Assembly: GCA_037447605.1 (NCBI GenBank)
Contig: CM074813.1
Coordinates: forward strand, 186,001 to 250,000
Length of the DNA: 64,000 nt
DNA from: Zygnema circumcarinatum SAG 698-1b
Taxonomy: Eukaryota; Plantae; Zygnematophyceae
Direction of reading: 5' to 3'
The translations under genes were made by a program, and so were the position numbers. The notes beneath the pieces are model-generated. The model worked only from the letters and a program-made list of their open reading frames with translations. It ran no database searches and was not told the DNA's origin. Shown piece by piece: positions 11,590-51,490 of this stretch (the first letter of the stretch is position 1; each line of letters begins with the position of its first letter).

Positions 11590-12241
11590 AACTTGCAGCC
11601 AATGACGCAAGTCTCAATACAGTAGCCATAGGAACAAACTCGTCGGCCGCGTCACGTCACGGTGGACATATGCGCTCCTTGTAAAGGGCCGCATCACGAG
11701 CAGCCCCGCCTTCATGGTTCGCTGTACGTGACAATAAACCGCGACGTGTTAGATCGGCCAACACAACATCCCCAATAATGCGCCGACCACCGTCCATAAG
11801 GGCCAAATCAGGGCAAACTCCGCGCTCGCCACGAGCAGGCGGTCGACGAGACACAAGGTGGCTCGGCTCGCGTCGTACGAGGAAGTTGGCCTCTTGTGCC
11901 ACTGCAGCAATCGCATCGCGCACAACATTATGAGCCAAGATGTATTTGCCGCCGAAAAAGGGAAAACCGCCCTCTTGCACATCGATCGAATCATCAGAAT
12001 CACAATGAGGAAAACCTTGCAATGGGGGGTGGGGGAGCCCGAGACGAAGTCGCTCTGCAAGCTGAAACTGGCCCGGAGTCAAACGAAGGGTGGAAAATAT
12101 CGGGGTAACCGCCAACCAAGCCCCAGCTCCGGGACCAGCACAAGAGCGAAGCCGAGCACGCGCAACATCAGAAGGAAGAGCCGCAATAAACTCAACAGCA
12201 ACCACCTCATCAGTCAAAATGGGCGGACAATGCTGACGCAT
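11590..12241 (-). mobile_element. Decayed C-terminal fragment of a non-LTR retrotransposon with a restriction-like endonuclease (RLE; CRE/R2-type)
   Basis: The translation ARLRSCAGPGAGAWL...FQLAERLRLGLP...HNVVRD...REP...CPDL...DV...K is followed out of frame by an FVPMA..ET-like segment. This is the thumb / eroded CCHC knuckle / PD-D-K order of RLE-LINE ORFs. No RT core is present in the window. Confidence 0.7.
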
Positions 12242-17112: not shown

Positions 17113-23159
<6,047 letters not shown>

Positions 23160-23857
23160 GCTATTCTGCACCTTAAATAAAGTAACATATGACCTCACCT
23201 TTTGTTTTTAGTCTCATCTATTATAGGACACCTGTTATGCAAACGGCTATTATCCCATTTCCTTTAAACTATTGGAGTGGGCCCGGCCGTTAGCATGTGG
23301 TGGATCTCAGAACAGTGGATCCAACCAGGGGCTCTTGCTGGTTAAGGATAGGCCTACCTCTGATTTCCTAAGCTCTGTTCAATAGTGGATCCGATTGATG
23401 TTTCGTAGTGGACTCGCGCGTGGGACGTTGGGACCAATAATGTCATTGATTCCACATCCTTAGGTTGAAAGGGTCGCATACTGTAGTCCGTACATTGGCG
23501 AAGCATGTGCATATCTTGTTGCATACCAATGCAATAAATGTAATTTTATTTTTATTTTTTTAATTCTTATGTTTTCGTTTCCGTTTCTTTCTCCCTTGAA
23601 TCATAATAATTTTGTAGATGAGAAACATGTACGCAAATGATGTTCATCTTTTTTACTGCTAATCTGCCACAAGTGCCAGGAACACTCCTGGTTGGCTAAT
23701 CGCCATTCCGGATTTACAAGGAAAAAAAAAAAAAAAAAAAAAAGGACTTTTAAGCTTTTTTGTTCCTTTAATAATACACTGTCCACAGACGTACCCTTTT
23801 TTCTGCTGTTCTTCAAGGTTCAAGTCAATTCAATCTCTCGTCCATCAGTGCCCAATG

Positions 23858-23952
23858 GAGCCAACCAGACCATATCGAGCCAAACGGATCCATACCGAGC
23901 CAATCGAATCATATCGAGTCAAACCGAGCCATATCGAGCCAAACTGAGCCAC
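23858..23952. repeat. ~20-bp tandem repeat (about 5 degenerate copies of GAGCCAAACNGANCCATATC) ~230 bp upstream of the CTC1 ATG
   Basis: gagccaaccagaccatatc / gagccaaacggatccatacc / gagccaatcgaatcatatc / gagtcaaaccgagccatatc / gagccaaactgagcc. Confidence 0.75.
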
Positions 23953-24176
23953 AGGGATTTGGCCTACCAATACCTGCCGACAAACGACAGGCGTAGCACA
24001 GTTCTAGGGGCGGTGAAACTGGCACATGTAGCCTCAGTTCGAGATCCCGTCACCCTGTAGTTGCGCTCAACGCATGGAACCGCGAAGGCGGGAAAGCGCG
24101 ATTGTGCGTTCAAATCTCAGTCTCTCCTCTCCTCGCGAGGAGGAGAGCACGCCTCGCTGGAGCGCTGACGGCAGCC

Positions 24177-27100
24177 ATGGCGGACCCTCGCCCCCCTTTG
24201 GAGCTTATGCCGATTTCAGAGCTTCTTGCGTACGATTATGGATGCTGCGGGAGGGTTTCCGCTTCTCTCTGCTCTCAGATACTGCAAAAATTCGAACTAG
24301 GGTTAGAGTTCAGGGAAGGCGAGACGGTGCAGGGGTCAGGGAGCCAGCGAGAGGCGGAGTCCGTTGAAGGGGTTCAGGGCTTCGCGGCACGGGATGAGGG
24401 AATAGCCTGTGGAGGCTTCCAGGGTTCAGAACCGTCGCCTGAAGTTAGGGCTAACGTCACGAAGAGGACTAGGAGTTTAGAGCAGGGTTCAGGGCAGCAA
24501 AAGAAGCACCGAAAGCTCGACAATGATGGGGAAGGGCGTTCCATGGCGGCTCCGTTCAGTGCAGGTGGACGGCTCCTTCCCTTCATTCCTCGTGTCGTCA
24601 CAGGGAGGCTTCAAGCGTGCCCTCCTGATGACGTCACCCCGGAGGTCGACTCTGGGAATAAGACAAACGCCGCCGCAAGGAACTGCCACTCACAGGGCGA
24701 CACGTGGCGGCTTGTTGATGAGACAGGGGCGGTGGACTGCGTGCTGCTTGCGCAAGAGCACCACGTGGAGGGGGCCCTGGTCGTGCTGACGTCATGGAGC
24801 TTCGCGCCGGGGGCATCGGAACCGCTTGACGACGTCAGCCCTAATGAGCGTGCTCGTGATGGCCTATCAGGAGGTGCCACGTGTCAGCAGGTGAGGCAAC
24901 AGAAGGAGCTTCTAGAAGCCTCCAGAAGGTTCCTCCGGCCGCTCCTCCACATTGGGTCCCTGGTCATATTGAAGAGGCCGCAACCATTAGACACTGGAAA
25001 CTGTGAATACCCAGAAATCCCGAAAGCTTTAGAATCTCCCAGAGCCCCGGAATGCCCTAAAACCCTGAATGCTAAATTCCCTCCGCTTAAACCCTCGCGC
25101 CTGAAAGTCTCCCTCTGTGGCGTTCTCCGCTCCCTAAGCCCCATCTGGGAGAAGCCGCCGTCTCGCTCGGCCAGCGCATCGGTCGGCGGAGCCAATGAGG
25201 GCGCGCCAGCTGGCAAGTGGAAAGGCTTCCTTGCTGAGCTCGGGGCGTGTCCTAACTGCATTCGAAATACGAAGAAAACTGAAACAGAAAACGACGGTAA
25301 TAATGAATCGATGAGTTCTACAGGTTTAAGCGAAACCGGAGAACGGAAAACTTTTGGCAGCAATTGCTGTGCTACCTCAACGGAATTGGCTTCAAATTTC
25401 CTTAGGCGGCATGGATTTCGGCGGCTTGTTCACGTGCTGGCACCGACACACGTCTATTTTGAGGGTTGCCAGCTGGCAAGGCAGTGGCCTGCCATGTCAG
25501 CAGGAGTCGGACGGTGCATAATTATAACGGAGGTTCTACGGAAGCGGCTGTTAGCAGCACAAAACAGAACGGAACGGACCGTCTACCTGGCGGGTTCTAT
25601 GACTCTCGCAGTGCCAGGTGGCGGCCTTCTGGGTATGACACGTGGCAGCAGAGCGAACGAGGAGGATTGCCAGGTGGCGAGCCGCGATTGGAGCACAAAA
25701 CGTAGTGACTTTTCGTACATTGGAGAGGTGACAGGTGTCCATTACGACGGAGCTTTGGTGGATCTTGACGGTGGAGCAGTGATCCTCGTAATGACACATG
25801 TCAACCTCTCATTCGTCCCTGGCCTTCAACTAGGAGCTCTTGTACGTCCTTCCCCCCTTTCCCCTTAGTTGTAAATCAATGCATTTAGGTCTCTCTCTCT
25901 TAAAGTGAAGGTTATTGGGTTTCCGTCAAGTTCTAGGGAATTAAGGATTTAAACCTTACACCTCATAAACATTGAAGTTATAATAAACCCTGAAAGGCTT
26001 TAATTACCTCCTTTCGGTTTGTCGGGCAAATGCGAAGAGGCGTGACAAATCTTTCTTATTGTAGTCGAATCGACATTTCAATTTTTTGGCAGTTCTTTCT
26101 TAGAGTGTATGACAGCAAATATTTCCGAATGCTGTCCAAGTATATCTTGATTCCTTTACATGCTTATCGGTGATTCGTGGTTCTCTGTATTGTCTAAATA
26201 AGGACATTGAACGACATTTTAAGGACAATAGCCGAGAAAGGCCGTATACTTTCCACACTATATCCAGTCCAACCTCGTTAGTAGAAATAACTCAATGCCC
26301 CAAATCGTTAGTTATCCCTACCGACGAGTTTTTCTCTCGTTTCTTGTTGTCCTGAATGTCAGGTGGCGGTCCGCCATTCGCATGTTCAAACTTTCCGAGA
26401 AGGTTCCGCGAAGTTTCCACTGTGGCTGGGCCTATGCCTTCATTCCCACGTGGCTGTGGTCCGCTTTTCGCCACTTGGCAAACCGTGAGTGGCTGGTCGA
26501 GATTCACAGAATTGTGAAACTGTAGAAAAATTCACTTTGGTTGGTTTATCCACCTTGGTCCTGATCTTCATCTTTGTCTGAGTGGAACTCTCTACCTTTA
26601 CCACTCCTCTCCTCCCTCTCCCTGTCCCTCTCTCTCTCTTTCCCTTTCACAGTCTATCTCTCTATCTACCTTGTCATTTCATGCAACTGGACAGTGTCCA
26701 CTGGATGATTTTTCTATGTGCTGATTGGTGACGGTAGGGCAGGCAAATAAAACTGTTGGGACAAAGACATCGTTTTCGTCGAAAGTTGGACCTTCTGCCC
26801 TTCTCAATAGCAGCGTGGTGAGTTGGGCCACCCCCTCCCCTCTCACTCACTCACTCACTCTCCCCCCCTGCTCCCTCCCTCCCTCCCTCCCTCCGAATGA
26901 ATGAATGAAAGTCGGATCTCGCATGTGAAGGGTGGCAGGTACTTCCGGAATCTTCAAAAGTTGGAACAAAAATTCGGTGATTTCAAATTTTGTCAATCCG
27001 AGTCCACTGTGGTATGGCACTTTTTGACACTCCTTTCGAATACCTTCATTTGCCTTTGTCCAATAATTTTTTCATTTTTATAAACTGTTCAGGTATCAAG

Positions 27101-30100
27101 GTCATTGAAACCAATTCAGATCGTATAAAGACAAAGCGAGAGAAGCGGAGGAGTTGTGAGATTCGCAACTGAAAAATGAACATTTTAGACCCTAATACTT
27201 TTATGCGACTAGTGATGCTTGAAGAACAGAACTGACAACATCTCTCTCACTGCCTCAGCACTCTGCCTCTCATCAGCGTGCCAGCTGGAAGCAGCTGATT
27301 GGCCGGCTCGACAGTTACGTGGCGGCATGCCACGTGCTGCCAACTCCATTGAAGCGTGTGAGGTTCCTTCCATTTCATTTTTCCCTTCTGTTGTGAAATT
27401 TATACCTTTAAGCTCGAAGTGTTTGTATCGGACTTGAGTCTAAACTCCGAACACTTTAGAAAATAAAATAACATTTGTAAGCCCGTCTACTCTCTATTCC
27501 CTCCCCCTCACTCCCCTCTCCCCTTCCCCTTCTACCCAAGCCCTCCTCTTCCTCTGCCTCTCCCATCCCCAGCATAGAGGAGATAATTCTTGATGCAAAA
27601 CCTTCTGCGTATACACATTAACATTCGTTTTGTCTTCTTTGATTTTGTTACCTTTGCATTATATTTGATATGTTCCTTTTACGCCTTTTTTCTGCAGGAT
27701 GTTTTTGAGGAGTTTATGGGGCATGACTCAGCTTGCCAGCTCAGCCGTTTGCCTCCACCTGGCAGCTGTCCATTGGTGCGCCATCAATACATCCTTCATT
27801 CAGCTCGACCATGCCAGCTAAGCACAACAGGCTAACAGTTCCGTTTTCCGTTGAGTAGTGCGTATCAGATTTCTGAGAAAGGTCAAAAAATCAAACGGCC
27901 TGGCAGGTTTGCACAATGGCTGAATTGCGCCAGCTGGCGCATTCCCATTGGCTGAAAGCAGCCTCAAGCAATGTTGGATCGAAACCGACCAATGGGATGA
28001 GCTCGTGGGATGAGACAGCGCTGAGCTGGCACCACGTGTCGGGCAGGGAGTTGGGCATCACCTTGATGGCAATTTTGCAGGTTAGCTGCAAAGGCCCCCA
28101 AAGCAACGGAGCCCCCTCCCACTCCCCCCCTCCCCCTCCCCCTCCCCCTCCCCCTCCCCCTCCCCCTCCCCCCTCCCCCTCCCCCTCCCCCTCCCCCTCC
28201 CCCTCCCCCTCCCCCTCCCCCTCCCCCTCCCCCTCCCCCTCCCCCTCCCCCTCCCCCTCCCCCTCCCCCTCCCCCTCCCCCTCCCCCTCCCCCTCCCCCT
28301 CCCCCTCCCCCTCCCCCCTCCCCCTCCCCTCCCCTCCCCCTCCCCCTCCACTCCTTCTCCCTCCCTCCTCACTTTCTCCCCATGTCTCGTCCCCTCGCCC
28401 CTCCTCCTATCTCTCCTCCCTCTCCGTCTGCCTCGCCCGCCTTCGTTGTCGCCTTCTCATTGCACTGTGGCGGTGACAGGTGGCGGAAGACTCCGGACAC
28501 GTCCAGCTGGCGGATGCCACGGGAGCTGCTGACGTGGCACTGGTGGGCTGTGCCCTTGACCCGGCCTCCCACCTCGGAGAGATCTGCGCGGTGGGGCCAC
28601 AACTTTGCTCAAAAAAATTATCACATTTTTTTACTCAAGCAGATACAAGAACAGATGCCTTCCCTCAAACCCTAACTGGTGCACCCCTTAAACCAGACCT
28701 TGAAATCTCTTCTAAATTCCCTGAATTTGCTGAATTCCCTTCCCTTCAAAACTATGGAAACTTTCAGCTTGTTTAGGAACTTCGTTTCATCATCTGAGTG
28801 ACTGAAGGGCAGCCAATGAGGACTCGCCAGCTGGCGAAGCTGATGATCCACCAATTGGAGCGTGCCAGGTGGCGGAATTTGAGCTGGTTCTAGAAGGCTT
28901 TACTGGCCCGCCTCTGCCGCCTCGACCAATCAGAGAGCAGGAGAGAACTCAGAAATGGGCAAAGGAAAGCCTGGGAACATATCGGAACACAAAAAAGTTT
29001 GAGCAGGACTGCCCGCTGCCCTGGGCAGACCTGTACGAGAAAAGCTCAGAAGTATCTCAGGAAGTGGCTGAATCGGGGACTCGAAAGCCAAAATTGACAA
29101 ATTTTTTTGTTCGGTGTCGGTCCAGTGACGTAATTTTTTTGGAGAAGAAAGAAAATGGGCTGAAAAAGCTGAGTGCGATGCTGCAAAAGGCACACTTGGG
29201 ACATGGAAAGCAACTTCAAATGGTGATCATTACTCATGTTCACCATTTGGCTCGGAAGGTGAGATGTCTCATTCTAACGGCCTTTCCATGTTTCCTGTGC
29301 AGCTCAGTTTCGTTGAACTTCAGAAGTGCCCCCCCCTCTCTCTCTCTCTCTTTCTCTCGCTCTCTCTCGCTCTCTCTCTCGTTCTCTCTCCCTCTCTCTC
29401 CCTCCCCCTCCCTCTCCCCTCCCCTTTGTGTTTGAACAACATTGCCAGTGCTGTAACCTTGACAGACTTTTCATCACAGCATTTAGGTTGGAAACACATG
29501 GCATGTCCCTGAAAGACAATTTTCTGGCCTGTGCCTGCAGGCGGCTCTAGCCAATGTGGTCGCGCCACGTGGCAAGGACCTGAGCTTTGTCGCTCATGCA
29601 ATTCAGCTGCCGCTGCGCATCGTTCTCGGGGAGTCTCAGGAAGTTTCAGCAAAGGTTTGTCCTTTTCTGGCCAACTTTCCAGACAAAGCGAAGCGGGGGG
29701 AGAGAGAAAGAGAGAGAGTGGGAGGGAGAGAGAGAGAGAGAGTTCCAAAATTGGGGCTTCTCGCTGACATGAGCTCTACACTTGGATTTGTCTGCTCCTC
29801 TCCTGTAAACGTGACAGGTGGCAGCAGGGGAGCCGTCGCCGAGCACTCCACTTCCATGCATGGAAACGGTGGAGCAGTTCCGTTGTGGGCCGTCATCTGG
29901 CCAACCGAATGGCGGCACGTGGCAGAAAGGCAATGAAAGTAGGTGTAGAGTTAAATGGATGGCGGCAATCGATGAGGATGCTGGAACGGAAACGGAAAGG
30001 GAAAACTGTTGCATGGAAGCAGTTGTGGAAGCCATGGATGGGGCTGCGGCGGAGAAGCTGCTCTTGGAGGTGACGGATATGGCCGCCCTCCAATTTAAGG

Positions 30101-33100
30101 TGCGGAATCAGAAATTACGGAGTACGGATTTGTGAGTTTCATTGATATGGCACATTCATGGAATCAAGATTCGACTATGGGAATATAGAGAAAGGGAGTT
30201 AAATGCAGAAAGGGAGTTTAACCTTTTTCTCTATCTCTCTCCACATTTCTGTTTCTCTCTCTCTCACTCTCTCTCTCTCTATCTCTCTCTCTTTTTCCCT
30301 CTCACTCTATCTCTCCTCGCTCTTTGTGGCAGATGCTGCAAGTTGGCCATTGCTATGTCGTTCCCAGCAACCCACCCTCTGCCTATTGCCAGACGCCACC
30401 TGGCGCCACCCCATTGGCTGACCGACAAACAAATAAAAGCAAAGATCTGCGAATTCGTCCTTCTCATCAAAAGAACGGCCTTCTGCAGCTGCCAGCTGGC
30501 GGAAAAAATGGGCCAATCCGAGTGCTCCATGTGGGGCCCACCTGTCCTATGTGGCGAGCTGCCGTCGACTCTCTTCCATCCACCCCTTGTGAACTTGGAA
30601 CCAAAAAAATAGGAGGAGAAAATAGGGATAAAAAAAAATTATGGCCGACCGAAGTATGGGGGGAGGGAGGGAAGGCATTAAGGCCAGCTGTCATTTTGGA
30701 GGTCCAATCGGAGATTGCCACGTGGCACGCGGAGCAGGTGAGCCGTTACAGAAAGGAATTCGTTACATCGTTACTTTCCGTAAGGGAGGTTTTGGGAGGG
30801 GAATCTTGTGAGGGGTGGGAAGGAGACAAAATTGAAGAAGAACAACTGCACCACAGACCCTTGCGGAAGTCATTTCCGGGTTGGAAACTTTTGGCCAATA
30901 GCAGAAGGACAGGTGGCATAAAGGGACTTAAAGGGAAGTTGGTGTCCTTTGTGGGAGTGGTGGGAGTGGTGTGGCGAGAAGGGAGAGGAGGAGGGTATGA
31001 AAGGGAGGGGGAATGGGAGAGGAGTATAGGAGGGACAGGTGGCGAACAGAGATTGGAGGGCAGCTGGATGCTTGTGATCCAAGTGCAGGATGAGGTGACA
31101 CCTGGCATTGTGGTGAGTCAAGTTACCTCTGTTGTTGTCTTACCATTTTTACAGATACAAGTTATGATGTTATAATGTCGTAGGGTTATTGAAATTATTT
31201 TGTGGAAAGGCAGAGGGGCCATAAGTGATGAAATTTGGGGAGTTCAGATAACCTCTCTTCTGGTAGAAAAATTGGGTTCGATCTTTAAGCTAATCATCAG
31301 AGCCCCCCATTCCCCCACCTTCCCCCCATCTCTTATATTTTGTCCCCTTCTTTTTTTCTTTGGGGTGTTCGCAGATTTCGGTCAGCTTTGAGAATTTTCG
31401 GCGGTGGGCTGTGCCCGTTGGACTATGCAAAGGAGCGAAAATTTCTTTCCGGCGCGTTCTTCTCCAGCAGTAAGAAAGCCAAATATTTACAATCTGGGAG
31501 AGGGGGACAAATGAAGGGGAGGAGGGAGGGAGGGAGGGGAGGGAGGAGGGGAGAGGAAGGAGGGAGAGTGGGGGGGAGAGAGTGGGGCGGAGAGGGTAAA
31601 GAGAGGGGGGAGAGGAAGGGGGGAGAGGGTGGGGGAGAGAGTGGGGGTGGATAGAATGGGAATCTTTCCAATACCTTGTTTTGTACAATGAGATTCCTGA
31701 ATTTTCAATTGCGTTTCTTTTCATTTTTTGGCCTTCTTTTTGTCTTTTCTTTGTTGGGGTGAGGGGAAAAAAAAAAGAGGGGGAGGGGAAAGAGGTAGGG
31801 GCTTTGTGAGAGAAAGAGGCGAAGTCTTTTCATAAGCATATACATTTTCTTTTTGGGTAAATTGTCCAACAGCAGGGACCCGAGTGGCGAATATTTCGCC
31901 CAATTTCTCGCTTGCTCCCTTATGAGATTGGAGCAGCTGCCCGAAAATGAGGAAAAGAAGCATTTCATGAAAGAAACAAAGGACCATGAATGGAATAATT
32001 TGAAAGGAAATGGCTTCAACGCTCGAGAAATGGACAGGAAAAAAAACATCCAAAGGAAATTGGAAGAAGTAATTATCCGGCAAGCCGTCAACATTCGATT
32101 ATGCGACATTAGCGATAATGGGATATATGAAAGAACGGAATTTTTCCGATTCCGGGCAAGGGTACGATTGTTACTTAATTCACCATTTTGTGTTTTTTAC
32201 GCACTATAGAGCCCTGGGAATTTGTCTTATTTGCTGTCTTCTGGAAAGGGTTAGGCTGACGTGGAGCTGGACCTTGACAGGTGTCGGGCGTTCATTGGAT
32301 CGTCTTGGATTGGTCTTGTCCGACACCTGCCAGCGTGGCAAGTCCAAGAGCCAATCAGAATGCGACAGTTCACATTGACGCCCGAGCAGGAGGCGCCACG
32401 TGTCACCTGTGCGGCAACTCGGGAAGAGAGCACGATGTGGCCGTTAAAGGAGCCGTCGTCAAAATTGGTGAGACTTTGTTTGACATTGTTTGACTTCGTT
32501 GACTTTCGCAAACTTACTAATTCGTAGAACAAGGGTTTGTCTCCTCTTTCTCTTTCCCTTTCTTTTCCTCTTTTCCTCCTCTTTTCTATTTCTACTTCTC
32601 CTCCCTCTCCCTTCTCCCTCTCTCTTTTCCCTCTTTCTCCCCATTCTTTTCGTCTTCTTCCTCAGCCACTCCCTCTCCCTTTCCCGTCTCCCTCCCGTCT
32701 CTCTCTCTCTCTCTCTCTCCTGCTTTGGCCTCTTCCCCTCTCTCGCCCTCCCCTCCCCTCTCCCCTCCCCTTCTCCTCCCAAAAGCCTACATTTCAGTAC
32801 TAGTCTCAATCCTTTCAGCGCCTTTCCATGCTGTACCGTTCCTCCGTTTCAGACGACGGAACTGGGCAAGCCATATGTGTCGCCTCCGGCCCAACTGCCA
32901 CCGCCCTCCTCGACTTCCCAGAAAAACAGCTGCAAACCAATAGATCTGCGCCACGTGGCGGCTCTCACGTGCGCCCGAGTGGCCCTTGTAGAGGCTCAGA
33001 TTGTCAGAGAGCTGCCGCGTGGCAGAGATTACGGAGAACTGTACGGCAACACGGAGCGCTGTTGGCCGTTACTGAGAGCCGCAAAGGGACGGGAGGGGGA

Positions 33101-33803
33101 GGCATTTGGGGTTCAGAGGAGGGTTCAGGGCCGTGGCAGGTTTTAGGGTTAAGGGAGGGAAGGGAGGAGGTGGGGGAGGAGGGGAGAGAGGCAGTGGCGG
33201 AGATCATTATGAGGAGCCGCCAGGAGGGGTCAAAGGTGAAATAGTTTTTTTCTCTTTATTTGGGCGGCCCCCTCCCCCACATTTTTTCCTTTTATTTCAA
33301 TGTCTTTTTGTCATGTTTTCTTGAATAGGGATGTGTGGCTGATTCTACCTGACCTTTGAAGAGAGAGTGATTGAGGGCTAATTTTGAACTTCATTTTTGG
33401 GTCCCTAATCCGGACTCATGTGTTGGTTTTTGGGCAGATAATTTATTGCAAAAAGGGACCTGCAATCCAACAGATGGCCGAATCTTTTCGAGCATCAGAC
33501 CCGCCCAATCTCTGTGAAAATTTATCCAAAGATCGCCGGTGGGGATTGGCTGCCGACTATCTTATTGGTGACATGTGTCACAGTGCACCGTCGAATAGCC
33601 TAAAACATCGCGACCTTTTGGGCAGAAATTTTGAAAAATTGCAATTCAAAAAAACTTTGATGTATGTGGGTGGCTCCTCCCATTGGACCCTCAAAAAATG
33701 CTTGGCGGAATTTTCGGTGGTTCGCACTGAAAAATTGCGCCCTGTCACCGAAGCGGCAAACGTGCTTAATGAGATTCGCGCACTCTTTGATTCCGAAAAC
33801 TGA
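24177..33803 (+). CDS. CTC1: CST complex subunit CTC1 (telomere OB-fold protein), multi-exon. First exon 24177-25841, last ~33439-33803; several internal boundaries approximate.
   Basis: Motifs [30 protein letters not shown]...GLQLGAL|VAVRHSHV...[37 protein letters not shown] and AVVKI|[20 protein letters not shown] occur in the order of conserved plant CTC1 blocks. Splice sites are GT-AG. Confidence 0.8.
28123..28349. repeat. (CCCCCT)n tract in a CTC1 intron; (GGGGGA)n on the minus strand
   Basis: Direct observation, about 37 units. Confidence 0.95.
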
Positions 33804-34416: not shown

Positions 34417-34469
34417 CCTATCACAGTTCTCCACGTGGACATAGTGATTACGTGGCGAATCCTGATTGG
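34417..34469. promoter_or_regulatory. ERSE (CCAAT-N9-CCACG on the minus strand, 34451-34469) plus a CCTAT-N9-CCACGTGG variant (34417-34438), ~300 bp upstream of ORF 34761
   Basis: The reverse complement of cgtggcgaatcctgattgg is CCAAT-caggattcg-CCACG, an exact ERSE consensus. Confidence 0.5.
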
Positions 34470-34760: not shown

Positions 34761-35933
34761 ATGGCCTCTGCGCCCGCTGAGGGCTCAGCGCAGGGCTCAG
34801 CGCTGCAGCTGCTGACGTGTGACGCCGCGTCGCTGATGCGATCCATGGGACCCCCCGGAAGCTTCCGGGACATTGCAAGGGGGCATGCAGCTGTGCGGAG
34901 GAAGGAGGAAGCTTCTGAGGACGAAGCGGGGAGAGGGAGAGGGGGCAGCTATGGCGTCGGGGAGCAGGAGATGCTTTCGGAGAAAACGAGGGTGAAGGTA
35001 GCCGGGGCTGCCGTTCCATGTATTGAGCGCTACGGAGCCGCGTTGGCAACTGCACGGAGCAGGGGGTCCTCCATAGCTGCGGGGATGCAGAGTTTGCAGC
35101 TCGTCCATGGCGCTGTGGGGGTCGGGAAGGGAGGGAGAGGGAGCGATAGAGTCAGAGACATGGAGGGTATCCTCGTCCTTGAGAATGTTAGTTTTGATTT
35201 CGACAATGAGGATGATTTTGGTAGTGATGAGGATGAGGTCATCGATGAAGGTGATGTCGTCGTTGATCATGATCATGACAATGATGATGATGACGAGGAT
35301 GATGTCGAGGGTGAGGATGTCGACGATGGTGATGTTGACGAGGACATGGGGTGGGGAGAAGGGAAGAGAGGGAGGATGGCGGAGGAGGAGGCGGCGTTGG
35401 AAGAGAAGTTGGTGGCGATTATTACAGGGGGTAAATGGGATGCGCTTAGTCCTAATTCTGGCAGGGTGGTAGCCGTGGGAGAGCACCAAGTGTGTGTGGG
35501 TTACAGAGAGGATTTCGTGTCGGGCTACCGAACATGGGAGTGGCAGGGGCACCTCACTGTGTACGATGATGAGGAGGGATTCACATCAGAGTATGTTTAT
35601 GGGAATCACTTCGAAGCGTTGGAGAGGTATGGAGACTTAGTAGAGGAAGAGGGAGAGAAGTGGGACGAGGGTGAGGAAGGGCGTGGGGAGAGTGTGGGAG
35701 AGGAAGGAGGAGATGCGTACGCCAATAGGAGGGGTCTTGGGACGGGAGGGAGAGGTGGGGAGAGAGGGAAAGGGAGGGAAGGAGAGGATCTCGGGGAGAG
35801 AAGGAAAGAGCGCGGTGTGTTGAGAGTGGAGGGAGTGTTAGGGTTAGGGTTTGTGCCAAGAGGACTCGGTCCTGGGGGGGGGCTTCCTGTAATTGAAGGC
35901 GGAGTCGGGAGAGCACGGAGGAGGAGGGAATAG
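34761..35933 (+). CDS. Single-exon acidic protein of unknown function with a plant-type domain (PNSGRVVAVGEHQVCVG...WEWQGHLTVYDDEEGFTSEYVYGNHFE)
   Basis: 390-aa ORF with an ATG start, a D/E-rich tract and a compact aromatic-rich domain. From memory it resembles an uncharacterised land-plant family; this was not verified. Telo-box-like AAACCCTAA lies upstream. Confidence 0.7.
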   Translation: MASAPAEGSAQGSALQLLTCDAASLMRSMGPPGSFRDIARGHAAVRRKEEASEDEAGRGRGGSYGVGEQEMLSEKTRVKVAGAAVPCIERYGAALATARSRGSSIAAGMQSLQLVHGAVGVGKGGRGSDRVRDMEGILVLENVSFDFDNEDDFGSDEDEVIDEGDVVVDHDHDNDDDDEDDVEGEDVDDGDVDEDMGWGEGKRGRMAEEEAALEEKLVAIITGGKWDALSPNSGRVVAVGEHQVCVGYREDFVSGYRTWEWQGHLTVYDDEEGFTSEYVYGNHFEALERYGDLVEEEGEKWDEGEEGRGESVGEEGGDAYANRRGLGTGGRGGERGKGREGEDLGERRKERGVLRVEGVLGLGFVPRGLGPGGGLPVIEGGVGRARRRRE

Positions 35934-37176: not shown

Positions 37177-39444
37177 TCACGTAAACTTGGAGTAGTCGTC
37201 ATCCGTGGGTCCCCGATAACCCGAAAACTTTCCCAAGTCTTGCAACGTCGCTTTCGAAGAGTCCCACCACCCTGAAGGGCTTCCAACGTTACTCTCTTCT
37301 CCACTCCCTCCCATTCGTCCTCCCTCTCCCAACCCCCCCCTCCATCCGCTCCCTCTCCCTCCACCTCTCCGACCCTCTCCCTCTCCCCCCCCCTCTCTCA
37401 GCCCACCATGCAGTTGCCGAGAGGGAACTTGCATATGTTCCGCCAAAGCCGCTAAAGACATAGTTGTGTGTCTCCGAGACGAGATTGGTCCCCCACGAGT
37501 CGAATTTTCGCTCTGTTCCGATGAGTCAGCTTCCAAGCTTGATGCCTCCGACTCTTCTCTCAATCTACCTCCCCCTTCCTCCCACCCTACCCCTCTCTCT
37601 CCCCTCACATCTGCCATGACCCCAAATGAATTGCCAAAATAACCTCTCCCTCTTCCCTCCGCAAGCGCAGGTCTCACTCCTCTCCCTCTCCCCTTCATAT
37701 CAAAACTGTTCCCAAAACGTTCCACCGAATTCGGCGGCTGCGTCCAAAAACTTCCGTCTCTGTACAAACCCTCGGCGGGTCTCACTTGCTGCTGAAAGCC
37801 CCCTCCTCCCACTCCTCTCTCTCCCCACCACCGCTCACCCCCTCCTCCCTCTGCCTGCCCCTCTTGCGGAAAATTAGTTCTGGCCTTCGCCCCCCTTAGC
37901 TTAATAGCCGCTTTATCGTACGCCCTTGCTGCCACTTCCGGCGAGTCAAAAGTTCCGAGCCAAACTCGCGACCTCTTTCTCGGAAATCGAATTTCCGCAA
38001 CCCACCTCCCTTCATGCCTTTGCCTTACACCCCTATATAGCTTTTCCCCCGCCTTCCTCCCACTCCCTCCCCCTCCTACTTCTCCTCCTCCTCCGCCTCC
38101 TCCTCCTCCTCCTCCTCCTCCTCCTCCTCCTCCTCTTCCTCCTCCTTCTCCTCCTTCTCTTCCTACCATCATACTCTCTCGCGCCTCATCTCCCCCTCTC
38201 CCTCTCCACACCTCGTCCATTCCTTCATCCCCTCCTCTCATGTACATCCCCACATCCATGGACCCCATGGGACCCCATTCCTCCCCTTGCCCCCCCTCAC
38301 CCATACCCATCAGCCCCATCATCGGCGCGTTCACACCATGTGAACGATTTTCAAGACATGTCGGAGACGTTAGGGCTTGGCTTGATCCTCGCTGTGACGT
38401 GACAACTCCCATGGCTAGCTCTATCCCTCTCTGACTTGGCAAACTTTCGCTCCCTCTCGATTCCTCTCCCTCCTCTCCTTCCTCTACTCCCTCCTCCCCC
38501 ACCCCGATCTCTGTCCCAAACTCAGTCATACCTCGATTCAGTTCAACGGAACCAGAACTGCCGCCCCACATGTCACCCCCCTCCCCCCATACATACGGCG
38601 CCCGTGACATCACTGGCCAGTTATGTGATGGCTGCTCCCACATACGTACCCCTCTGCCGCTCAGACTCGGCTGCTGCCGCGCGTGCCACGTCATTTCCGG
38701 TACGACTTCATCGAGGCCCAGAAACGCGCCACCTGGCAACTCCCCACTGGCTCCTCCGCCCTCCCCCCATCCGCGAGCCTCCGAAAAGCCCTCCATCTGT
38801 CCGTACAGTGTTCCTCCTCCGGGCCTGGAGGCGATGACAGCTGGCGGTCGAGGCGCACCGCCAGCTGGCGTGTGCCTATTGGCCGCGTTCTGGATTCGCG
38901 CCGCCTCCGCCTCTATGGCCGCGAGAAGGAAGGGAGATTCCACCGCCATGGACTCTCCCCTCTCACTCTCTCGCCTCCACCTCGGCCTTCCAGCAGCCAT
39001 GGCCGCCTCTCCAAGCTCTTCTCTATAGTATGGGGGGGGGGGAACAAGCCCCCCTCCTCCTCCTCCGTCCCACTTCTGGGACACGGCCCGAGACTGAAGC
39101 TCTTCTCCTACTTGGATCAAATTGACGCTGAAGTTTACGTTATAAAAATGGGGTGAAAAGGGATCTGCCAATCCGCCGTATTCAAACATCGAGACGTCGC
39201 GGGAAGGGAGGGGGGAGGGGATAAGGTTCAGGGAGGGAGGGAGGATCTGGGGGGGTCTAGAAAGAGGAGGGAGAGAGATGGCGGGAGGGGCTGGGTAATA
39301 AGATGGAGGGAGGGGTGATGAGGAAGGGAAGGGGGGAAGGGAGGGAAGAGACGGGAGAGAGGGAGAGGTGGGAGAGAGTGTGGATGAAAGGCGGTCGTCT
39401 GGTGGCGGAGGACGCATGAGGGGAGATAGGAGGGAATGACGCAT
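37177..39444 (-). CDS. AP2/ERF transcription factor, DREB subfamily, group I (A-6/RAP2.4)-like, intronless
   Basis: AP2 domain [59 protein letters not shown]. It has V14 and the [10 protein letters not shown] start typical of group I. Confidence 0.88.
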
Positions 39445-39809
39445 CGCATGGTAAGGAGGGAGAGAGAGAGAGAGACACAGCCGCGCGTGTGCGAGTGAGA
39501 GGAAAGAAACTATGTGCAGAAGCAGAAAAGTGAAGAGCGCAGAGAGAGACTCACGCCTGAGTGTGTGAGAGAATCAGACGACAGAGAGAGAGAGAGAGAG
39601 ACTCAGGCCGGAGAGTGGGGGAGAGAGTGAAAAAGAGTGAGAGAGAGAGACTCAAACAAGAGGAAGAGAGTCAGAGGAAGAGAGACTCAGGCCGGAGAGA
39701 GAGAAAAGGGGGGGGGGGGGGGGAGAGGAGAATACAGGGACACCCGGACGCAAGTGAAGCTCACCTCACTGTGCGCCTCCTTCATAGCGCGCGCGCCCTC
39801 TGACGGCCG

Positions 39810-40310
39810 GCCACGTGGTGGCCGCCAGTGACGAGCCAGCCGATATTTTGGGCTCGCGCGGACACGTGTCGCACGCAGCGGCTGTCGCCCCGTCGCGGGG
39901 GTACCAGCGCGGCGGGAAAAGCGCGTTACCGTACGGTCGGACAAGCCGGGCACCACGTGCCCGGCTCTGACTGGCGCAGCCCCAAATCGCCGACACGTGG
40001 GTGACGAGTGGCTCACTGTGATTTGTCCATGAAGATATTTTGGATCTTCAAAAAATGCGCCGAACGAGATCCCCCATTTCCGTTTGTCTAAAAATGGGTT
40101 TCCGGCGCTTTTGGAGATTTTGGGATCTGGTTGGACCACTGGGATGGCGGCACGTGGTGAGGGAAGGAGGAAAACGACAAGCGGCAGGTCGCCGATTGGC
40201 AGATGCCTGACGTCAGTGGGCAAACGTGGCGAGTGGAGGGGGCTCAAAAGCGCGGAGGGAAAGTCAACCGCCAAGTGGTGCCACTTGCGGGCAGGACAGG
40301 CCACGTGGCG
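39810..40310. promoter_or_regulatory. G-box/ABRE-dense upstream region of the group I AP2 gene
   Basis: CACGTG/ACGTGG cores at about 39812, 39863, 39954, 39995, 40151, 40224 and 40302, with a GCCGAC (DRE) at ~39989. Confidence 0.45.
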
Positions 40311-40410
40311 ACTGCGGACTCGAGGCTGACTCCACTGTACGAACGGATAAATATCGTATCGCGAGAGTACAGCGATATACCCGGGATATATCCAGAATAT
40401 ATTGAGTAAT

Positions 40411-40476
40411 GGACTGGACTGGATTGCACTGGACTAAAACTGGAACTGAACGGGAACTGCAACTGAACTGAACTGG
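40411..40476. repeat. Degenerate (ACTGG/AACTG)n short repeat
   Basis: ggactggactggattgcactggactaaaactggaactgaacgggaactgcaactgaactgaactgg. Confidence 0.7.
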
Positions 40477-40812
40477 TTTTTGAGAAGTCTTGGGGCGGGC
40501 GAGTAGTCCAGCGCGTGGTTGCGGGGCGGCGCAGGCGCTGAAGGGCCCCTCGCAGCTGTCCGCTAGAATGTGGGGGTGCTGAAGGTGGTATTATTGGAGG
40601 GGGAAGCTCACGCGGCGCTTGGGCGCTTTCCATCAAACTCGAACGTGAAAAGCAAACGGCTTCATAGCCTGAAACCTTTCGCGCGGGCCGCTCAAGAATG
40701 AAGGCAACAAACAAAGAAGCAAACGAAAACGGTGTTGGGAACTCCTGCATCCACTGTTGTTCGCAATGAATGTTACCAGCTAAAAACAAAACAGAACGAT
40801 TTACGTCCACTG

Positions 40813-40883
40813 TGTGCCAGCCGGGAATCGAACCCGGGTCTGCACCGTGGCAGGGTGCTATTCTACCACTAGACCACTGGCAC
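40813..40883 (-). tRNA. trnG-GCC: tRNA-Gly (GCC)
   Basis: The minus strand reads GTGCCAGTGGTCTAGTGGTAGAATAGCACCCTGCCACGGTGCAGACCCGGGTTCGATTCCCGGCTGGCACA (71 nt). A and B boxes are intact, the anticodon is GCC, there is a TATA-like sequence upstream and a T-run terminator ~20 nt downstream. Confidence 0.97.
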
Positions 40884-42161
40884 TCGATGTAAATTTGGAG
40901 GAGCTAATATTATAAATATAAATTTACATAGTGCAAATAATAATTGGTTTATCCAGGCTCAGTGGACATTGACACTCCATTCCACCCAGCCGCGGCCCGT
41001 CTCTCCCGTACGGTCCGTGATTGCAAGGTTCAGCCCCCCGGCGCCGCAGTGGACCCCTTTGTCCACTGTGCGGACGCGGCCCTCGGATCGGATCATCCCC
41101 CCCGCACCCGTCCGTACGGTCGGCCGCATCGGCCGGTCTCTGCGCGTCCCTTAGGCGCCCCCTCACGTGTTCGCACGCGGCTGCCCGCCCGCAACTGGCC
41201 GCTCCTACGCGACAAGAATACCCTCCCCTCCAGGATCGTGCCGTACATTTTGTACATCTGCGAAGATTGTCGCGCCAGCTCAGCCCTATGTTTCCTTGTC
41301 GCGTTCGTCTTCGTAACTCTGTCGTATAGGGAACACTTTGTCGGAAAGCTGACCGGTGGTACTTGCTCTCTTTGGCAACGGCACTGACGGACAAAATATC
41401 ATAAATGGCCCGGGCGGCGAAGGAAGCTAACGTCAAAGATCGCGCGGGCGGGCCGGCAAATCCGGGTCGAGATCAAATCAAAAGGTATGGATCGTGGGCG
41501 GCGCCTTCTGACGGGAGGGGCGAAGTTTGGTTTTTTGGGGGCAGGCTCACTGCCCGGAAATGGCGGGCCGATGTGTGGACAAAGATTTGATTTTTAAAGA
41601 TTTGCTGCGATTTCGGGATCCATGTGGATCCACAGAGGGTAAGGAAATTGTTGGGCCATGGAGCGGCGTTTGGTAGCGCAACTGCGAACGCATAGACCCT
41701 CCCCCTGCATAGAGCTCTCATCCTTCCAGCCCTCCCTTTCCCCGAACGATCCATGCCACGCCGTTCTGTCATAATCCAACAGCCAGTTCCGCAGATGTGC
41801 CCTCTGTTCAACGCAGTTCAGTTCCCTCGTCCTGCCCGGCCCAAAAGCTTTCCCCTGCCCGGCGCTGCCCGCCTTTACGCGCGCGGCAGATCCCGCATCC
41901 GCCCGCGATTGCCCCTTGTCCTTCCTCCCCACTCCGGCCATAAACTACTCGCCCGCGTACCGCCCGCGGGCCGCCCTCCCTCCCTCACTCCATCACTCTC
42001 TCTCTGCCTCACTCTCGCATGCCGCCTCCCTACTCACTCGCCTCTCCCAGATCCCGATATTTCTCACCTCCCGATATTTTTTCTCTCACAGCTCTCGCTC
42101 TCTGTACTTCCACCCTTTTATCTCTCTTATCACCCACTGCTCTCCAGCGCAAGATGAGAGC

Positions 42162-44048
42162 ATGGCCGGGTTGTCTTTCCCCCCGTTAAGTCCCATTGCG
42201 GAAAGAACAGCAAAAGGAAGTGCCCGATACCGCCCTCGCTCTCCCCCCCTCATGTCTTCCTCTCCTCCCAACCACCACCTTTGCCCCGGCTTCCCCAATT
42301 CCATGTCTCCCTTCCCCTCTCTCCCCTTCCCTCTCCCTCCGCACCTTCCAACCTCCCACCCGCCCTCTCACCTCAACTTCCCCCCCCCTTCCCATCCCAC
42401 CTCCCACTCCCCTTCCCCCTCCCCCCCCACCTCCCACCCCACTTCCCTTCCTCCTCCTTCCTCCACCCCCCTTCCTCTCCCTCCCCCACCCAAGAAGCGC
42501 ATCCGCCGTGGAGCCAAGGGTATGATAAAGGGAGTCAAAGGCGGCCCTGAGAATGCCTCCCACGGCTACCGGGGCGTACGGCAGCGCACGTGGGGAAAGT
42601 GGGTGGCGGAGATAAGGGAGCCGCGCAACCGCACTCGTCTCTGGCTTGGCTCCTTCGGGACAGCGGAGGAGGCCGCTCTCGCATACGACAAAGCCGCCAA
42701 AGTCCTCCATGGATCCCGGGCGCGTTTCAACCTTCTGGGGAAGGGAGGAGGGGGGAAGAGGCAGCCCAGCGAGACGGCCATGGCGGCGAGAGTGCGGCAG
42801 GTGGCGGGGAAGAGAGTTGAGGAGAGGGAGGGAGGGAAAGGGGGAGAAGGAACGATCGAGGGGGGGAGGGAGGGGGGAGAGAAGGGAGTGAGCGTGGGAG
42901 TTGGGCTGGCAGAGGACAGAAAGGGAGAGGGGCTGTGGAGGGCGGGGAGTGTACTTCTTCCGGGTGGATTGGGGTTGGTGGGACAAGGAGAAAGTGCCAC
43001 GTGGCAGGATGTGAATAGGCGCCCGGGCATACACTTGTTGCAGGAGACCGGGAAGGCTGGGGGGGGCCATGGGAGCCGCCACGTGGCAGTTGGGGAGGGA
43101 ACCGGGAGGGTAGTAGTTGGGGGAGGAGAGGCCGGGCCGTCGAGGACGGCAGTTTCCGTAAAACTGGAGAGCATGGATCTGCGGGATAGGTTGTCCGGGG
43201 GGGCGGGCCCCGCCTCTGTGGCCATGGGCGAGGAAGGGGAGGCGGCAGAGCCCGACATGTTCAGGGCGCTTATGGAAGCAGGGTTCGTGCCAGGTGTCAC
43301 GCTCCGATTGGGCGACGCGGTGTCGGCGGAAGAGAAAGAGCAGCACTCGAGAAGCTTCCCGGAGGCTGCTGCGGGGCAGGAAGTGAAGGGTCCGGGCGGG
43401 GCGGCCATGGCGGAAGGAGAGGCGGAATGGCTGGGAGACGATCTCGACTGCTGGCGATTGCCGGAGCTCGAGCACATACCCGAAGGCATGATGTTGCCGG
43501 ATGCACATCATCCGATGATGATGTCGCCGACGTCCTTTGCGCAAGAGCGTTTGCACTTTGAGGAGAGGGAGAAGCGGTCGACGGAGGGAGAGGGGTCGGA
43601 GAGACGGTCTGATTCCCCGAATTCAAGCTGGTCGTCGTCGTCGCGGGAGACCTCCTCTGAGACAGACAGAGAATTTCCACTCATTGAAAGGTCGTCGGAG
43701 ACCGACAATTTCTCGGAAGCCATGGCCTGGTCCTCGCCGTGGTCGGTAGCGCCACATCAGCAGGAGATGCCACGTCAATATGAGGTGCCATGTCAGCAGA
43801 ACATGAACCCACGTCAGCAGGTGGTGGAGGGGCGGCAAGGGCAGCGACAGGGAGAGGGGCTGATGGACAAGGTGCCACGTCAGCAAGTGGGTGAAGCGCC
43901 ACGTGGCGGGCAGCCAATGGTTGGGGCGGAGGGAGGGAGCGAGAGGCGGAATGTGATTGGAAGGAGCACGTCGTTGTCCTGCACGATCTCTGCTGACGTG
44001 GCAGTTCAGGCGCCATGTCAGCTTACAGACATCTTTGACATCTTCTGA
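42162..44048 (+). CDS. AP2/ERF transcription factor, DREB2 (group IV/A-2)-like, copy 1, intronless
   Basis: [21 protein letters not shown] (CMIV-1-like NLS motif) followed by [44 protein letters not shown], with V14/E19. The first in-frame ATG is at 42162. Confidence 0.9.
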
Positions 44049-46357: not shown

Positions 46358-46373
46358 GATGACGTGGACCAAT
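46358..46373 (-). promoter_or_regulatory. Plant UPR element P-UPRE (ATTGGTCCACGTCATC; overlapping ERSE-II and TGACGTGG UPRE)
   Basis: The plus strand GATGACGTGGACCAAT is the exact reverse complement of ATTGGTCCACGTCATC. It lies ~160 bp upstream of the OST3/6 ATG. Confidence 0.7.
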
Positions 46374-49381: not shown

Positions 49382-50686
49382 ACCCTGATTCTTTTCTTAA
49401 AAACCCCGATCTCGTTACCATACAAATCCTGAAAACCTCCTTGTTTGGAGGACCCACATGCTGTACCCTTGTTGTTAATAATTTTTTTTTAATAAGTTGT
49501 ACCTCAGGCTTGAGCTTCCGTGTTGTGTACGCCAACGGAGCTATGTTCAGTTTTTTGTATGTAAACGCGTTTCTGCTCTGTTTGAATGCATAGAGCTCAC
49601 AAGCAACGCAGTTCTATGCCCGCACTGTCCCATGTCCACCAGAGCAGTTCGAAACCACTGGAACTACCACAACCAGTTCCGTGGTCAACCGTCGGCGTAA
49701 CGAGCGTCACATGGAACATCAACAATGTGGGCCCAACCCACGTAGTCCCGCATGGGTCCCACAACGCCCACAACGACAATGTGGTGCAGTGTTCACACAG
49801 CGAAAAGCGACAATTCCGAGCTTAAACCATACGTTTCCTGAGGTCGATCTCACGACGTACTGTTTCTTGTCGGCACATCTCGCTACCGTTTTGCGACGTA
49901 CTTATTCGAGTCGGCGCGCCATCCCAGGGTTGGCGCAAGCCAGCCAGGACGTCGTTTTCGATCCTTCCAACGCTGTCGCCATCTGTCAAGCACCGAATGT
50001 GCGAAAATCTTCAGAATTATTTATTTTTCAGCAACTTTGGACCAATATTAGCCGTCCGATTGATTCACGTTTTAACATCTACGGACAATACTCATTTGAT
50101 TGTGGCCGCATGGCCTGCCCTGGATCTTCGGTCACATGTCCAAAAATATTTTTCTTGTTGACAGGATCGTTCTTTGAACCGCTCAGGTCCTTGGATCCAC
50201 AATGATCCAAAATGTTGATTGACCAATCACAGAACATAACCTCTCGTTAAGCCAATTGAAACGCGGAAACGTTGATCCTACGAAGGTTGATCCTTGCCCC
50301 CGGCAGATCCGTCGGTTTCTCGTCCAGTCCTACTACGACACGTTGAAACCGCCAACCGTACATTCGTACAACTCGGTACCAGTGTCCGTACGGTACCCGC
50401 CTCCCTCTCCCCGGAGAACCCCCCCCCCCCCCCCCCTCAGCCGCCCAACAAGTGGCAGTTCCCCCAACGAGCAGGTGGTCCAAGCAGGCCATTTTACGCT
50501 CCCTGTTCTCACAAAAAGAAAGCAATTTCGGCGCAACTTTTGTCGCTCTAGGGTAGAATTCAGCCAATAATAAAACTCCACATCGTAGTTTTCTGAATTT
50601 TTTTAACGAGACTACGTGAAATACCGGCTGATTTTGGCCCACTTTTGAGCAATTTCTCCGTTGGTTTTGGGTTAAAAAAGCAGAAT

Positions 50687-51490
50687 ATGGCTCAAGCAGG
50701 GGATTCCGGAGGGAACTATGGCCCCTCTGGCAGCAACGATAGCGAGGGAGAGAGAGGGACGAGTCCGGGAGGGCAAGATCACCACTCGGAGGTGAGGGAG
50801 CAGGACCGCTTCCTCCCGATTGCAAATGTGGGACGGGTTATGAAGAGAGCGCTTCCCACAAATGCAAAAATTTCGAAGGATGCGAAAGAAACGATGCAGG
50901 AATGCGTCTCGGAGTTTATCAGCTTCATAACCGGTGAAGCAAGCGATAAGTGCGCTAGAGAAAAGCGAAAAACGATCAATGGAGACGACATTTTGTGGGC
51001 CATGAGCACGCTCGGGTGAGTGGAGAAGGGGTCTTATTTCTTTCTTCTTTTCTTTTTGGTGTTTTTCAGCTCTTTGTTATTCTCAGGGGAAGGAGGCTTT
51101 TGTACTCTTTATTTCGTTTTTATTTATGCGGGCACTTTGTCGCTTGTTCTAAGCTATCTGCTTTCAGTATGGTTTATGGCTGCCGCTGCCAATCTGCTAA
51201 ACTTTAATAGTCTTTTATACTTTTCATTTTGCAAGATGTCAAGATGTCAAGATGTCATTTCTGTCATCGTGATACGGAGGTTATTACTGTATTATTCTAT
51301 CATCATGATTCAACTCTAGCCAGAAGTGCTTTCTGCCTCACTCCGACTATGTAGAAGCAAAACCGATGAGGGCTCAGGCAGGGTGGGGGAGAGAGAGAAG
51401 GGAGAGGCCGAGGTCGAGAGAGAGAGAAAGAAGATGCGAGAGAATTGAGGCCAAGAAATATATATTTGTACATAGAGAGAGGGAAAGAAC

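Follow-up and report, generated by a model that had tools for sequence, protein, structure and literature searches.

The CTC1 locus

We analyzed a 64,000-nt stretch of DNA from Zygnema circumcarinatum SAG 698-1b (contig CM074813.1, positions 186,001 to 250,000; hereafter the window, with coordinates counted from its first letter), in which a homolog of the telomere gene CTC1 carries along its gene body an array of a composite element, a CCAAT pentamer with a CANNTG box exactly 10 nt downstream.

24177..33803, plus strand: CTC1 gene, provisional 16-exon model with 4862 nt of exon and 4728 nt of intron

The assignment of the gene to CTC1, already made in an earlier note based on the letters alone, is borne out by the match of exon 1 (24177-25841) to Pfam CTC1_2 (E 4.9e-19) and by colinear matches, extending to about 33800, to a profile built from seven homologs and searched exon by exon. 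The profile matches are strong for exons 1 and 2, moderate for the exons at 27698, 28480, 31375, and 32853, and weak or lacking for the rest. The model is phase-consistent from 27259 on and has one phase break, at 26485-27258, where a small exon or another boundary is provisionally considered to be missing. The acceptors at 28480, 29818, and 32281 are supported because an in-frame TGA lies two codons ahead of the exon start. Sequencing run X1, which is not recorded as RNA, contains 0.44 of the words, against an exon share of about 0.5, a value that fits transcription without showing it. Two simple-sequence arrays accompany the gene: a 10/20-bp tandem array (approximately 9.6 copies of a 10-mer) at 23858-23951, 230 nt upstream of the CTC1 start in a promoter without a box, and approximately 39 copies of CCCCCT in an intron at 28112-28349, where the opposite strand forms a long array of G-runs that could fold into G-quadruplexes.

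A composite element with a single spacing

Between positions 25000 and 33100, CCAAT-N(k)-CANNTG occurs 15 times at k = 10 and not once at k = 4-9 or 11-16, and no other spacing up to 30 is seen more than once; in the whole window, there are 17 matches at k = 10 and 0-3 at each remaining spacing. CTC1 has 39 CCAAT/ATTGG pentamers, so that approximately 0.2 matches at k = 10 would be expected by chance, whereas 15 of the 39 have the box in exact register. The earlier note, which had counted by eye about 15 of approximately 38, was thus accurate, and each of its 15 sites was recovered, as were the three copies (29551, 30704, and 32937) that perfectly match CCAAT-N9-CCACG, the endoplasmic reticulum stress response element (ERSE) bound by NF-Y with ATF6 or bZIP28 (PMC5499772). 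No peak was seen when the reverse arrangement, with the box 5′ of CCAAT, was counted over spacings. The copies are as follows:

25192..25212, plus strand: composite, centre GC, exon 1
25671..25691, minus strand: composite, centre CC, exon 1
27282..27302, minus strand: composite, centre GC, provisional exon
27756..27776, minus strand: composite, centre GG, overlapping a possible donor at 27776
27931..27951, minus strand: composite, centre GC, exon
28813..28833, plus strand: composite, centre GC, intronic in the provisional model, <60 nt from the acceptor at 28869
28851..28871, plus strand: composite, centre GG, box straddling the acceptor at 28869
29551..29571, plus strand: composite, exact ERSE, centre CG, provisional exon
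30397..30417, minus strand: composite, centre GG, with a one-mismatch CCTAT on the opposite side, at 30382, in matching register
30513..30533, plus strand: composite, centre TG, weak flanks
30704..30724, plus strand: composite, exact ERSE, centre CG
30895..30915, plus strand: composite with a GACA flank, centre GG, located in a provisional exon (30702-31112) and an 850-nt open frame
31036..31056, minus strand: composite, centre CC
32278..32298, minus strand: composite, centre CC, box straddling the proposed acceptor at 32281
32937..32957, plus strand: composite, exact ERSE, centre CG, exon

In the provisional model, 11 of the 15 composites are exonic, three (27756, 28851, and 32278) cross junctions and one is intronic. 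The exonic copies, six sense and five antisense, fall into five strand/frame classes, in agreement with the description in the earlier note of mostly exonic copies in both orientations and varied frames. Of the two overlaps with splice junctions that it reported, that of 28851 with the 28869 acceptor holds in the provisional model, and the donor at 27776 is only a possible one.

The codon-aware shuffle that had been proposed as a check, run here on the CTC1 exons, gave the sharp peak at k = 10 that was anticipated: the 11 exonic composites compare with a mean of 0.86 (maximum 4) in 1000 synonymous re-draws and with 0.05 in codon-order shuffles, and at other spacings from 5 to 15 the exonic count is 0. 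Within the better-supported exons, 4 composites were observed versus 0.47 (maximum 2) by synonymous re-draw. That the synonymous null is itself higher at k = 10 is in part a tautology, and we gave it no weight as evidence. The array of composites in CTC1 is a real feature, far beyond chance.

Consensus of the element and nature of the box

Alignment of all 17 copies in the window yielded the consensus RRCCAATSRR-N4-YG[C/A]CA-SS-TG[G/T]CR, which has wider flanks and a narrower centre than the pattern CCANNTGG put forward earlier. The consensus of NF-Y sites is RRCCAATSRR; scored against it, the CCAAT pentamers of composites match at 3.9 of 5 flanking positions versus 2.6 of 5 at the other 114 CCAAT (p = 2e-4). 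The box is a 12-bp dyad with nearly invariant CA and TG, with flanks that tolerate change and with C or G at both centre positions. There are 24 perfect boxes, and neighbours altered at CA or TG are almost absent. Among half-sites (n = 108), YGCCAS accounts for 64 and TGACAS for 18, and only 12 of the 54 dyad 12-mers are perfect palindromes.

The centre is free. In CTC1, the ratio of CG, GC, and GG/CC centres is 7:6:11, which agrees with any combination of C and G (S-S; p = 0.88), whereas CG leads in the rest of the window (12:3:6), the difference being of p = 0.06-0.08; in the motif CCA-SS-TG[GT]C, each of the four S-S centres is 18-37-fold enriched. The TGACGT-type site TGACGTCA is enriched as well (12 both-strand counts versus 0.9 expected), whereas TGAGCTCA is not (0 versus 3.5). 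TGACGT-type sites near composites keep the CG centre, and no case of TGACGT in register with CCAAT was found. CASSTG is a named E-box (PMC6962311), and the box fits the E-box of bHLH proteins in its invariant CA/TG and tolerant centre, as a sequence match only. Because CA and TG are near-invariant and the centre can be any S-S, the partner of NF-Y is more likely an E-box reader than an ACGT-binding bZIP. We infer that the window has two readers: one is a bZIP of the ordinary ACGT kind, and the other a dimer of E-box type that pairs with NF-Y. The identification of the element as an ERSE read by bZIP28 is not supported: 12 of the 15 copies lack CCACG, the centre is free and the ACGT-type sites in the window keep CG.

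Boxes without CCAAT and their distribution

The larger set comprises 27 ten-bp boxes in CTC1, 12 of them in composites and 15 without CCAAT:

24699..26479, no strand assigned: eight solo 10-bp boxes in exons 1-2, starting at 24699, 24876, 25468, 25613, 25637, 25730, 25793, and 26470
28475..33579, no strand assigned: seven solo boxes, starting at 28475, 29813, 30491, 30683, 31097, 32395, and 33570

The solo boxes at 24699 and 24876 have a one-mismatch CCAAT in register, and those at 28475 and 29813 straddle acceptors. By place, 21 of the 27 boxes are exonic and 4 lie across acceptors, while the remaining 2 are found in introns, each near an acceptor. The 21 exonic boxes, distributed 11/5/5 over the reading frames, compare with 0.5 expected by composition and 2.4 by synonymous re-draw, and the better-supported exons alone hold 13 versus 1.4 expected. 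The exon bias (p = 4e-5) is strong but not absolute, because introns also exceed the composition-corrected chance (2 versus 0.13). No box was found in the 1.2 kb upstream of CTC1 (23000-24176), and no periodic spacing of the boxes was apparent by eye. In five of the 15 proposed acceptors, the junction itself is a CAG|GTG box (26360-26372, 28475-28486, 28864-28875, 29813-29824, and 32276-32287); these acceptors have 7-10 pyrimidines in the 16 upstream positions versus a median of 12 in the others. At 32395-32410, in a provisional exon, two overlapping boxes encode ATCHLCG, a CxxC-like peptide.

Box density differs among genes. The CTC1 exons hold about 4.3 boxes per kb, three AP2/ERF genes 1.3-2.4 and OST3 1, and none was found in TPX2, the ACS-like gene, the G-patch gene or the open reading frame at 34761 of the same window (heterogeneity p = 9e-4, for this one window). 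The long open frames of the AP2/ERF genes (37177-39444, 42159-44048, and 62240-63889) carry in their coding sequence 11 boxes and two composites (38882 and 43311), so that the element extends beyond CTC1:

38862..38882, minus strand: composite in an AP2/ERF coding region, centre GC
43291..43311, minus strand: composite in a second AP2/ERF coding region, centre CC

Origin of the copies

When the consensus positions are set aside, similarity among the copies (0.249) does not exceed that of the control (0.255), and no repeat family covers them. Together with the two orientations and five strand/frame classes, the unrelated spacers uphold the previous conclusion that the array is neither a protein repeat nor a duplication. 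Because the copies are unalike outside the consensus, mostly imperfect palindromes and free of any repeat family, we conclude that they arose through point changes. Within a conserved VTGV, codon choice by itself spells out one box; other boxes sit at residues differing from those of land-plant homologs (GDTW versus GDSF/ADCL, CQLA with a one-residue insertion, and RQVA versus KKVV in OST3), single cases suggesting that the motif may have altered the protein. Identity to homologs is 0.27 at box residues and 0.24 elsewhere. The composite is absent from the distant OST3 homolog, and no Rfam match was found in 23500-31400.

Comparison with known systems

The composites share with the ERSE octamers of Arabidopsis the register, the side and the GCCA/GACA flanks (PMC5499772), CCAAT lying 5′ of the partner site with a 9-nt spacer. 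The CCACG core, however, is present in only 3 of the 15 copies, the other 12 having non-CG centres, and conservation extends to the far dyad half, unlike in ERSE. Moreover, ERSE is found in promoters of ER-stress genes, whereas the composites occupy coding exons of a telomere gene, the upstream region of which is box-free. Because core and location differ, we do not classify the element as ERSE despite its ERSE geometry.

Two matches to stress-response elements lie elsewhere in the window. An exact CCAAT-N9-CCACG without the far dyad half, at 34451-34469, is located upstream of an orphan acidic open reading frame (34761-35933) and looks promoter-type, and an exact plant unfolded protein response element, ATTGGTCCACG, is found on the minus strand at 46363-46373, between OST3 and the ACS-like gene.

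In the NF-Y/USF1 module, the E-box, CACGTG, lies 5′ of CCAAT, separated by 10 bp, with 10-12 nt taken as its range (PMC4889920, PMC12065363). The E-box at a fixed distance of approximately 10 nt, implying cooperative binding, is common to both, but here it reads CASSTG and is located 3′, and the 5′ side shows no peak. The TALE dimer site of MEIS3, TGACAGGTGTCA (PMC5449588), resembles the box in its 12-bp dyad and mixed CAG/CAC half-sites, and in the DECA-CCAAT element NF-Y is paired with TALE proteins at a constant distance (bioRxiv 10.64898/2026.02.16.706105; PMC12065363); it differs in that its half-sites are TGACAS, rather than mostly YGCCAS, and in that the TALE site lies 5′ of CCAAT.

Transcription factor sites overlapping codons (duons) exist in plants, and sites in coding regions have been put forward as a candidate context for repression (PMC6790085, PMC13534478). 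Like them, the composites overlap codons with biased synonymous choice (in exons that are provisional here), but the plant duons described are scattered single-factor sites, whereas a fixed two-factor geometry recurs along one gene in this case. The highly iterated palindrome 1 of cyanobacteria (HIP1; PMC5861425) is likewise a palindromic word, tens-fold over-represented in all reading frames; the element considered here is instead degenerate, linked to CCAAT, clustered in particular genes and in exons, and eukaryotic, without the even spread across genes and non-coding DNA (p = 9e-4 for genes and p = 4e-5 for exons, in one window). Thus, the suggestion that nothing of the kind has been described must be narrowed: ERSE geometry, stereo-alignment of NF-Y with E-boxes, and plant duons are each known, whereas no paper was found on this variant or this density. 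Judged from sequence, the novelty appears to be an ERSE geometry with a free, E-box-type centre, very dense in the exons of one gene. The free S-S centre would imply that NF-Y has, on the ERSE side, a partner of which no description was found.

Interpretation of the array

Cooperative binding on double-stranded DNA is suggested by the one spacing, the one side, the NF-Y flanks, and the occurrence on both strands, and we consider it very probable that the composites are bound by protein. The earlier proposal of a DNA-level composite for NF-Y and a dimeric partner superimposed on coding sequence is supported by the same flanks and geometry and by the unrelatedness of the copies. With middling confidence, we interpret the array as a selected gene-body control region of putative NF-Y/E-box sites. 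NF-Y would sit on RRCCAATSRR, and the dimer, placed 3′ of it in a single helical register, would read a 12-bp dyad of two YG[C/A]CA[C/G] half-sites; an E-box reader of the bHLH type would be the first choice for the dimer, a TALE-type dimer the second, and the solo boxes would be targets of this dimer as well. Sites would be gained singly by point change wherever the code permits, including at acceptors, which would be easy targets as CAG|GT already supplies five of the six core bases. Selection would then keep them as a distributed region setting the transcription or chromatin state of CTC1, with a dampening role slightly favoured, by analogy alone with the coding-region sites of plants. The sequence itself shows the spacing and the side, the consensus, the bias toward exons and toward particular genes, the synonymous choice, and the independence of the copies; the proteins, their binding, selection and the sign of the effect are inferred.

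Several observations weigh against this interpretation. Approximately 30 sites are far above the plausible need of one telomere gene, and the exon bias is partly circular, because a number of the exons are only provisional and the vicinity of boxes was where some of them were located. All three distant (land-plant) CTC1 loci lack the composite; searches by protein, one of them empty within its length limits, and in metagenomes returned no close relatives, only these three distant CTC1 and, for OST3, a best match of 46%. Furthermore, the NF-Y/USF and NF-Y/TALE modules place the partner 5′, not 3′, of CCAAT (PMC12065363), and coding-only bZIP/NAC/MYB sites of Arabidopsis mostly show no hormone response (PMC13534478).

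The most serious competitor, although itself unlikely, is a binding-linked drive resembling HIP1, in which the complex binds and the bound DNA mutates more slowly or wins gene conversion, for example by being cut less at meiosis and serving as template, with the sites as mere passengers. Such a drive would account for very dense sites without obvious need, in all frames and on both strands, for the excess of perfect sites over near-misses, and for sites at acceptors that need few steps, some with short pyrimidine tracts. However, unconstrained introns should fill first, yet they hold 2 boxes versus 21 in exons, and TPX2, a poorly conserved neighbour of 6 kb, has none. We know of no comparable drive in eukaryotes, which also counts against it. 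HIP1 itself seems to be kept by selection (PMC5861425). The gene specificity of the sites, and their avoidance of introns free from constraint, lead us to favour selection on the CTC1 array over drive.

It is distinctly less probable that the element is an ERSE-type NF-Y/bZIP site, with its centre shifted away from CpG to stay bindable in a methylated gene body, or with the bZIP relaxed by NF-Y cooperativity. The exact ERSE register and flanks and the three exact copies are what this predicts, as is the borderline rarity of CG centres in CTC1 relative to the rest of the window; window-wide, moreover, CG centres are found in 3 of 16 composites versus 28 of 55 solo boxes (p = 0.025). Inside CTC1, however, the centres of composites and solo boxes are alike (p = 0.46) without a 5′-3′ trend, non-CG centres are enriched in solo boxes as well, and TGAC-type sites keep CG. 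Nor are CTC1 exons CpG-poor (0.79-0.85), and deamination-type centres are rare. A methylation signature was not found, as TpG/CpA is not raised and tracts of purines and pyrimidines confound the low CpG of introns; the anti-silencing (anti-methylation) role envisaged earlier thus receives no support from base composition.

Less probable still is an exon-definition or splicing code, with boxes marking exons or acceptors through RNA binding or polymerase pausing. Every one of the 27 boxes is exonic or lies no more than approximately 55 nt upstream of an acceptor, 5 of the 15 acceptors are spanned by a box (full in four cases and half in one), and the box would read alike in RNA because its consensus is self-complementary. 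With the CCAAT half antisense in 5 of the 11 exonic copies, however, the splicing-linked code suggested earlier is unlikely for the composite. Besides, intronless AP2/ERF genes carry the element while the multi-exon TPX2 does not, and no RNA fold common to the boxes was found. CAG|GT is the ordinary acceptor consensus, and box-acceptor overlap is for that reason expected in any model of site gain. An origin of the copies in a repeat or the end of a transposon, in mutation that perfects palindromes, or in a peptide motif is hardly credible and largely refuted, given copies 24.9% alike versus 25.5% in the control, no repeat family, perfect palindromes in only 12 of 54 12-mers, and differing peptides in frames that are open and colinear with CTC1.

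Returning to the putative NF-Y/E-box array, we tentatively propose a broader and doubtful generalization, in which NF-Y with a non-ACGT E-box reader would mark chosen genes along all their exons, with sites gained so strongly, through selection or drive, as to set codon choice, invade acceptors and alter residues. If true, this would be a gene-body code separate from the promoter element and would give HIP1 a two-factor counterpart in eukaryotes. Should the sites prove to be bound, they would constitute an unusually clean regulatory code overlapping the genetic code, with a built-in negative control in the fixed spacing (a one-base shift) and with sites that can be removed synonymously. This makes testable what binding sites in plant coding regions do, and whether they are selected or pile up through a DNA-level bias.

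Other features of the window

An NF-YB gene is located at 50645-51019 (Pfam CBFD_NFYB_HMF, E 3e-27), its presence in the same window probably being a coincidence. Two regions, 11657-12241 and 39687-41436, resemble retroelement debris by eye, without Pfam support; 2 boxes and 7 matches of ACGT type lie in the second.

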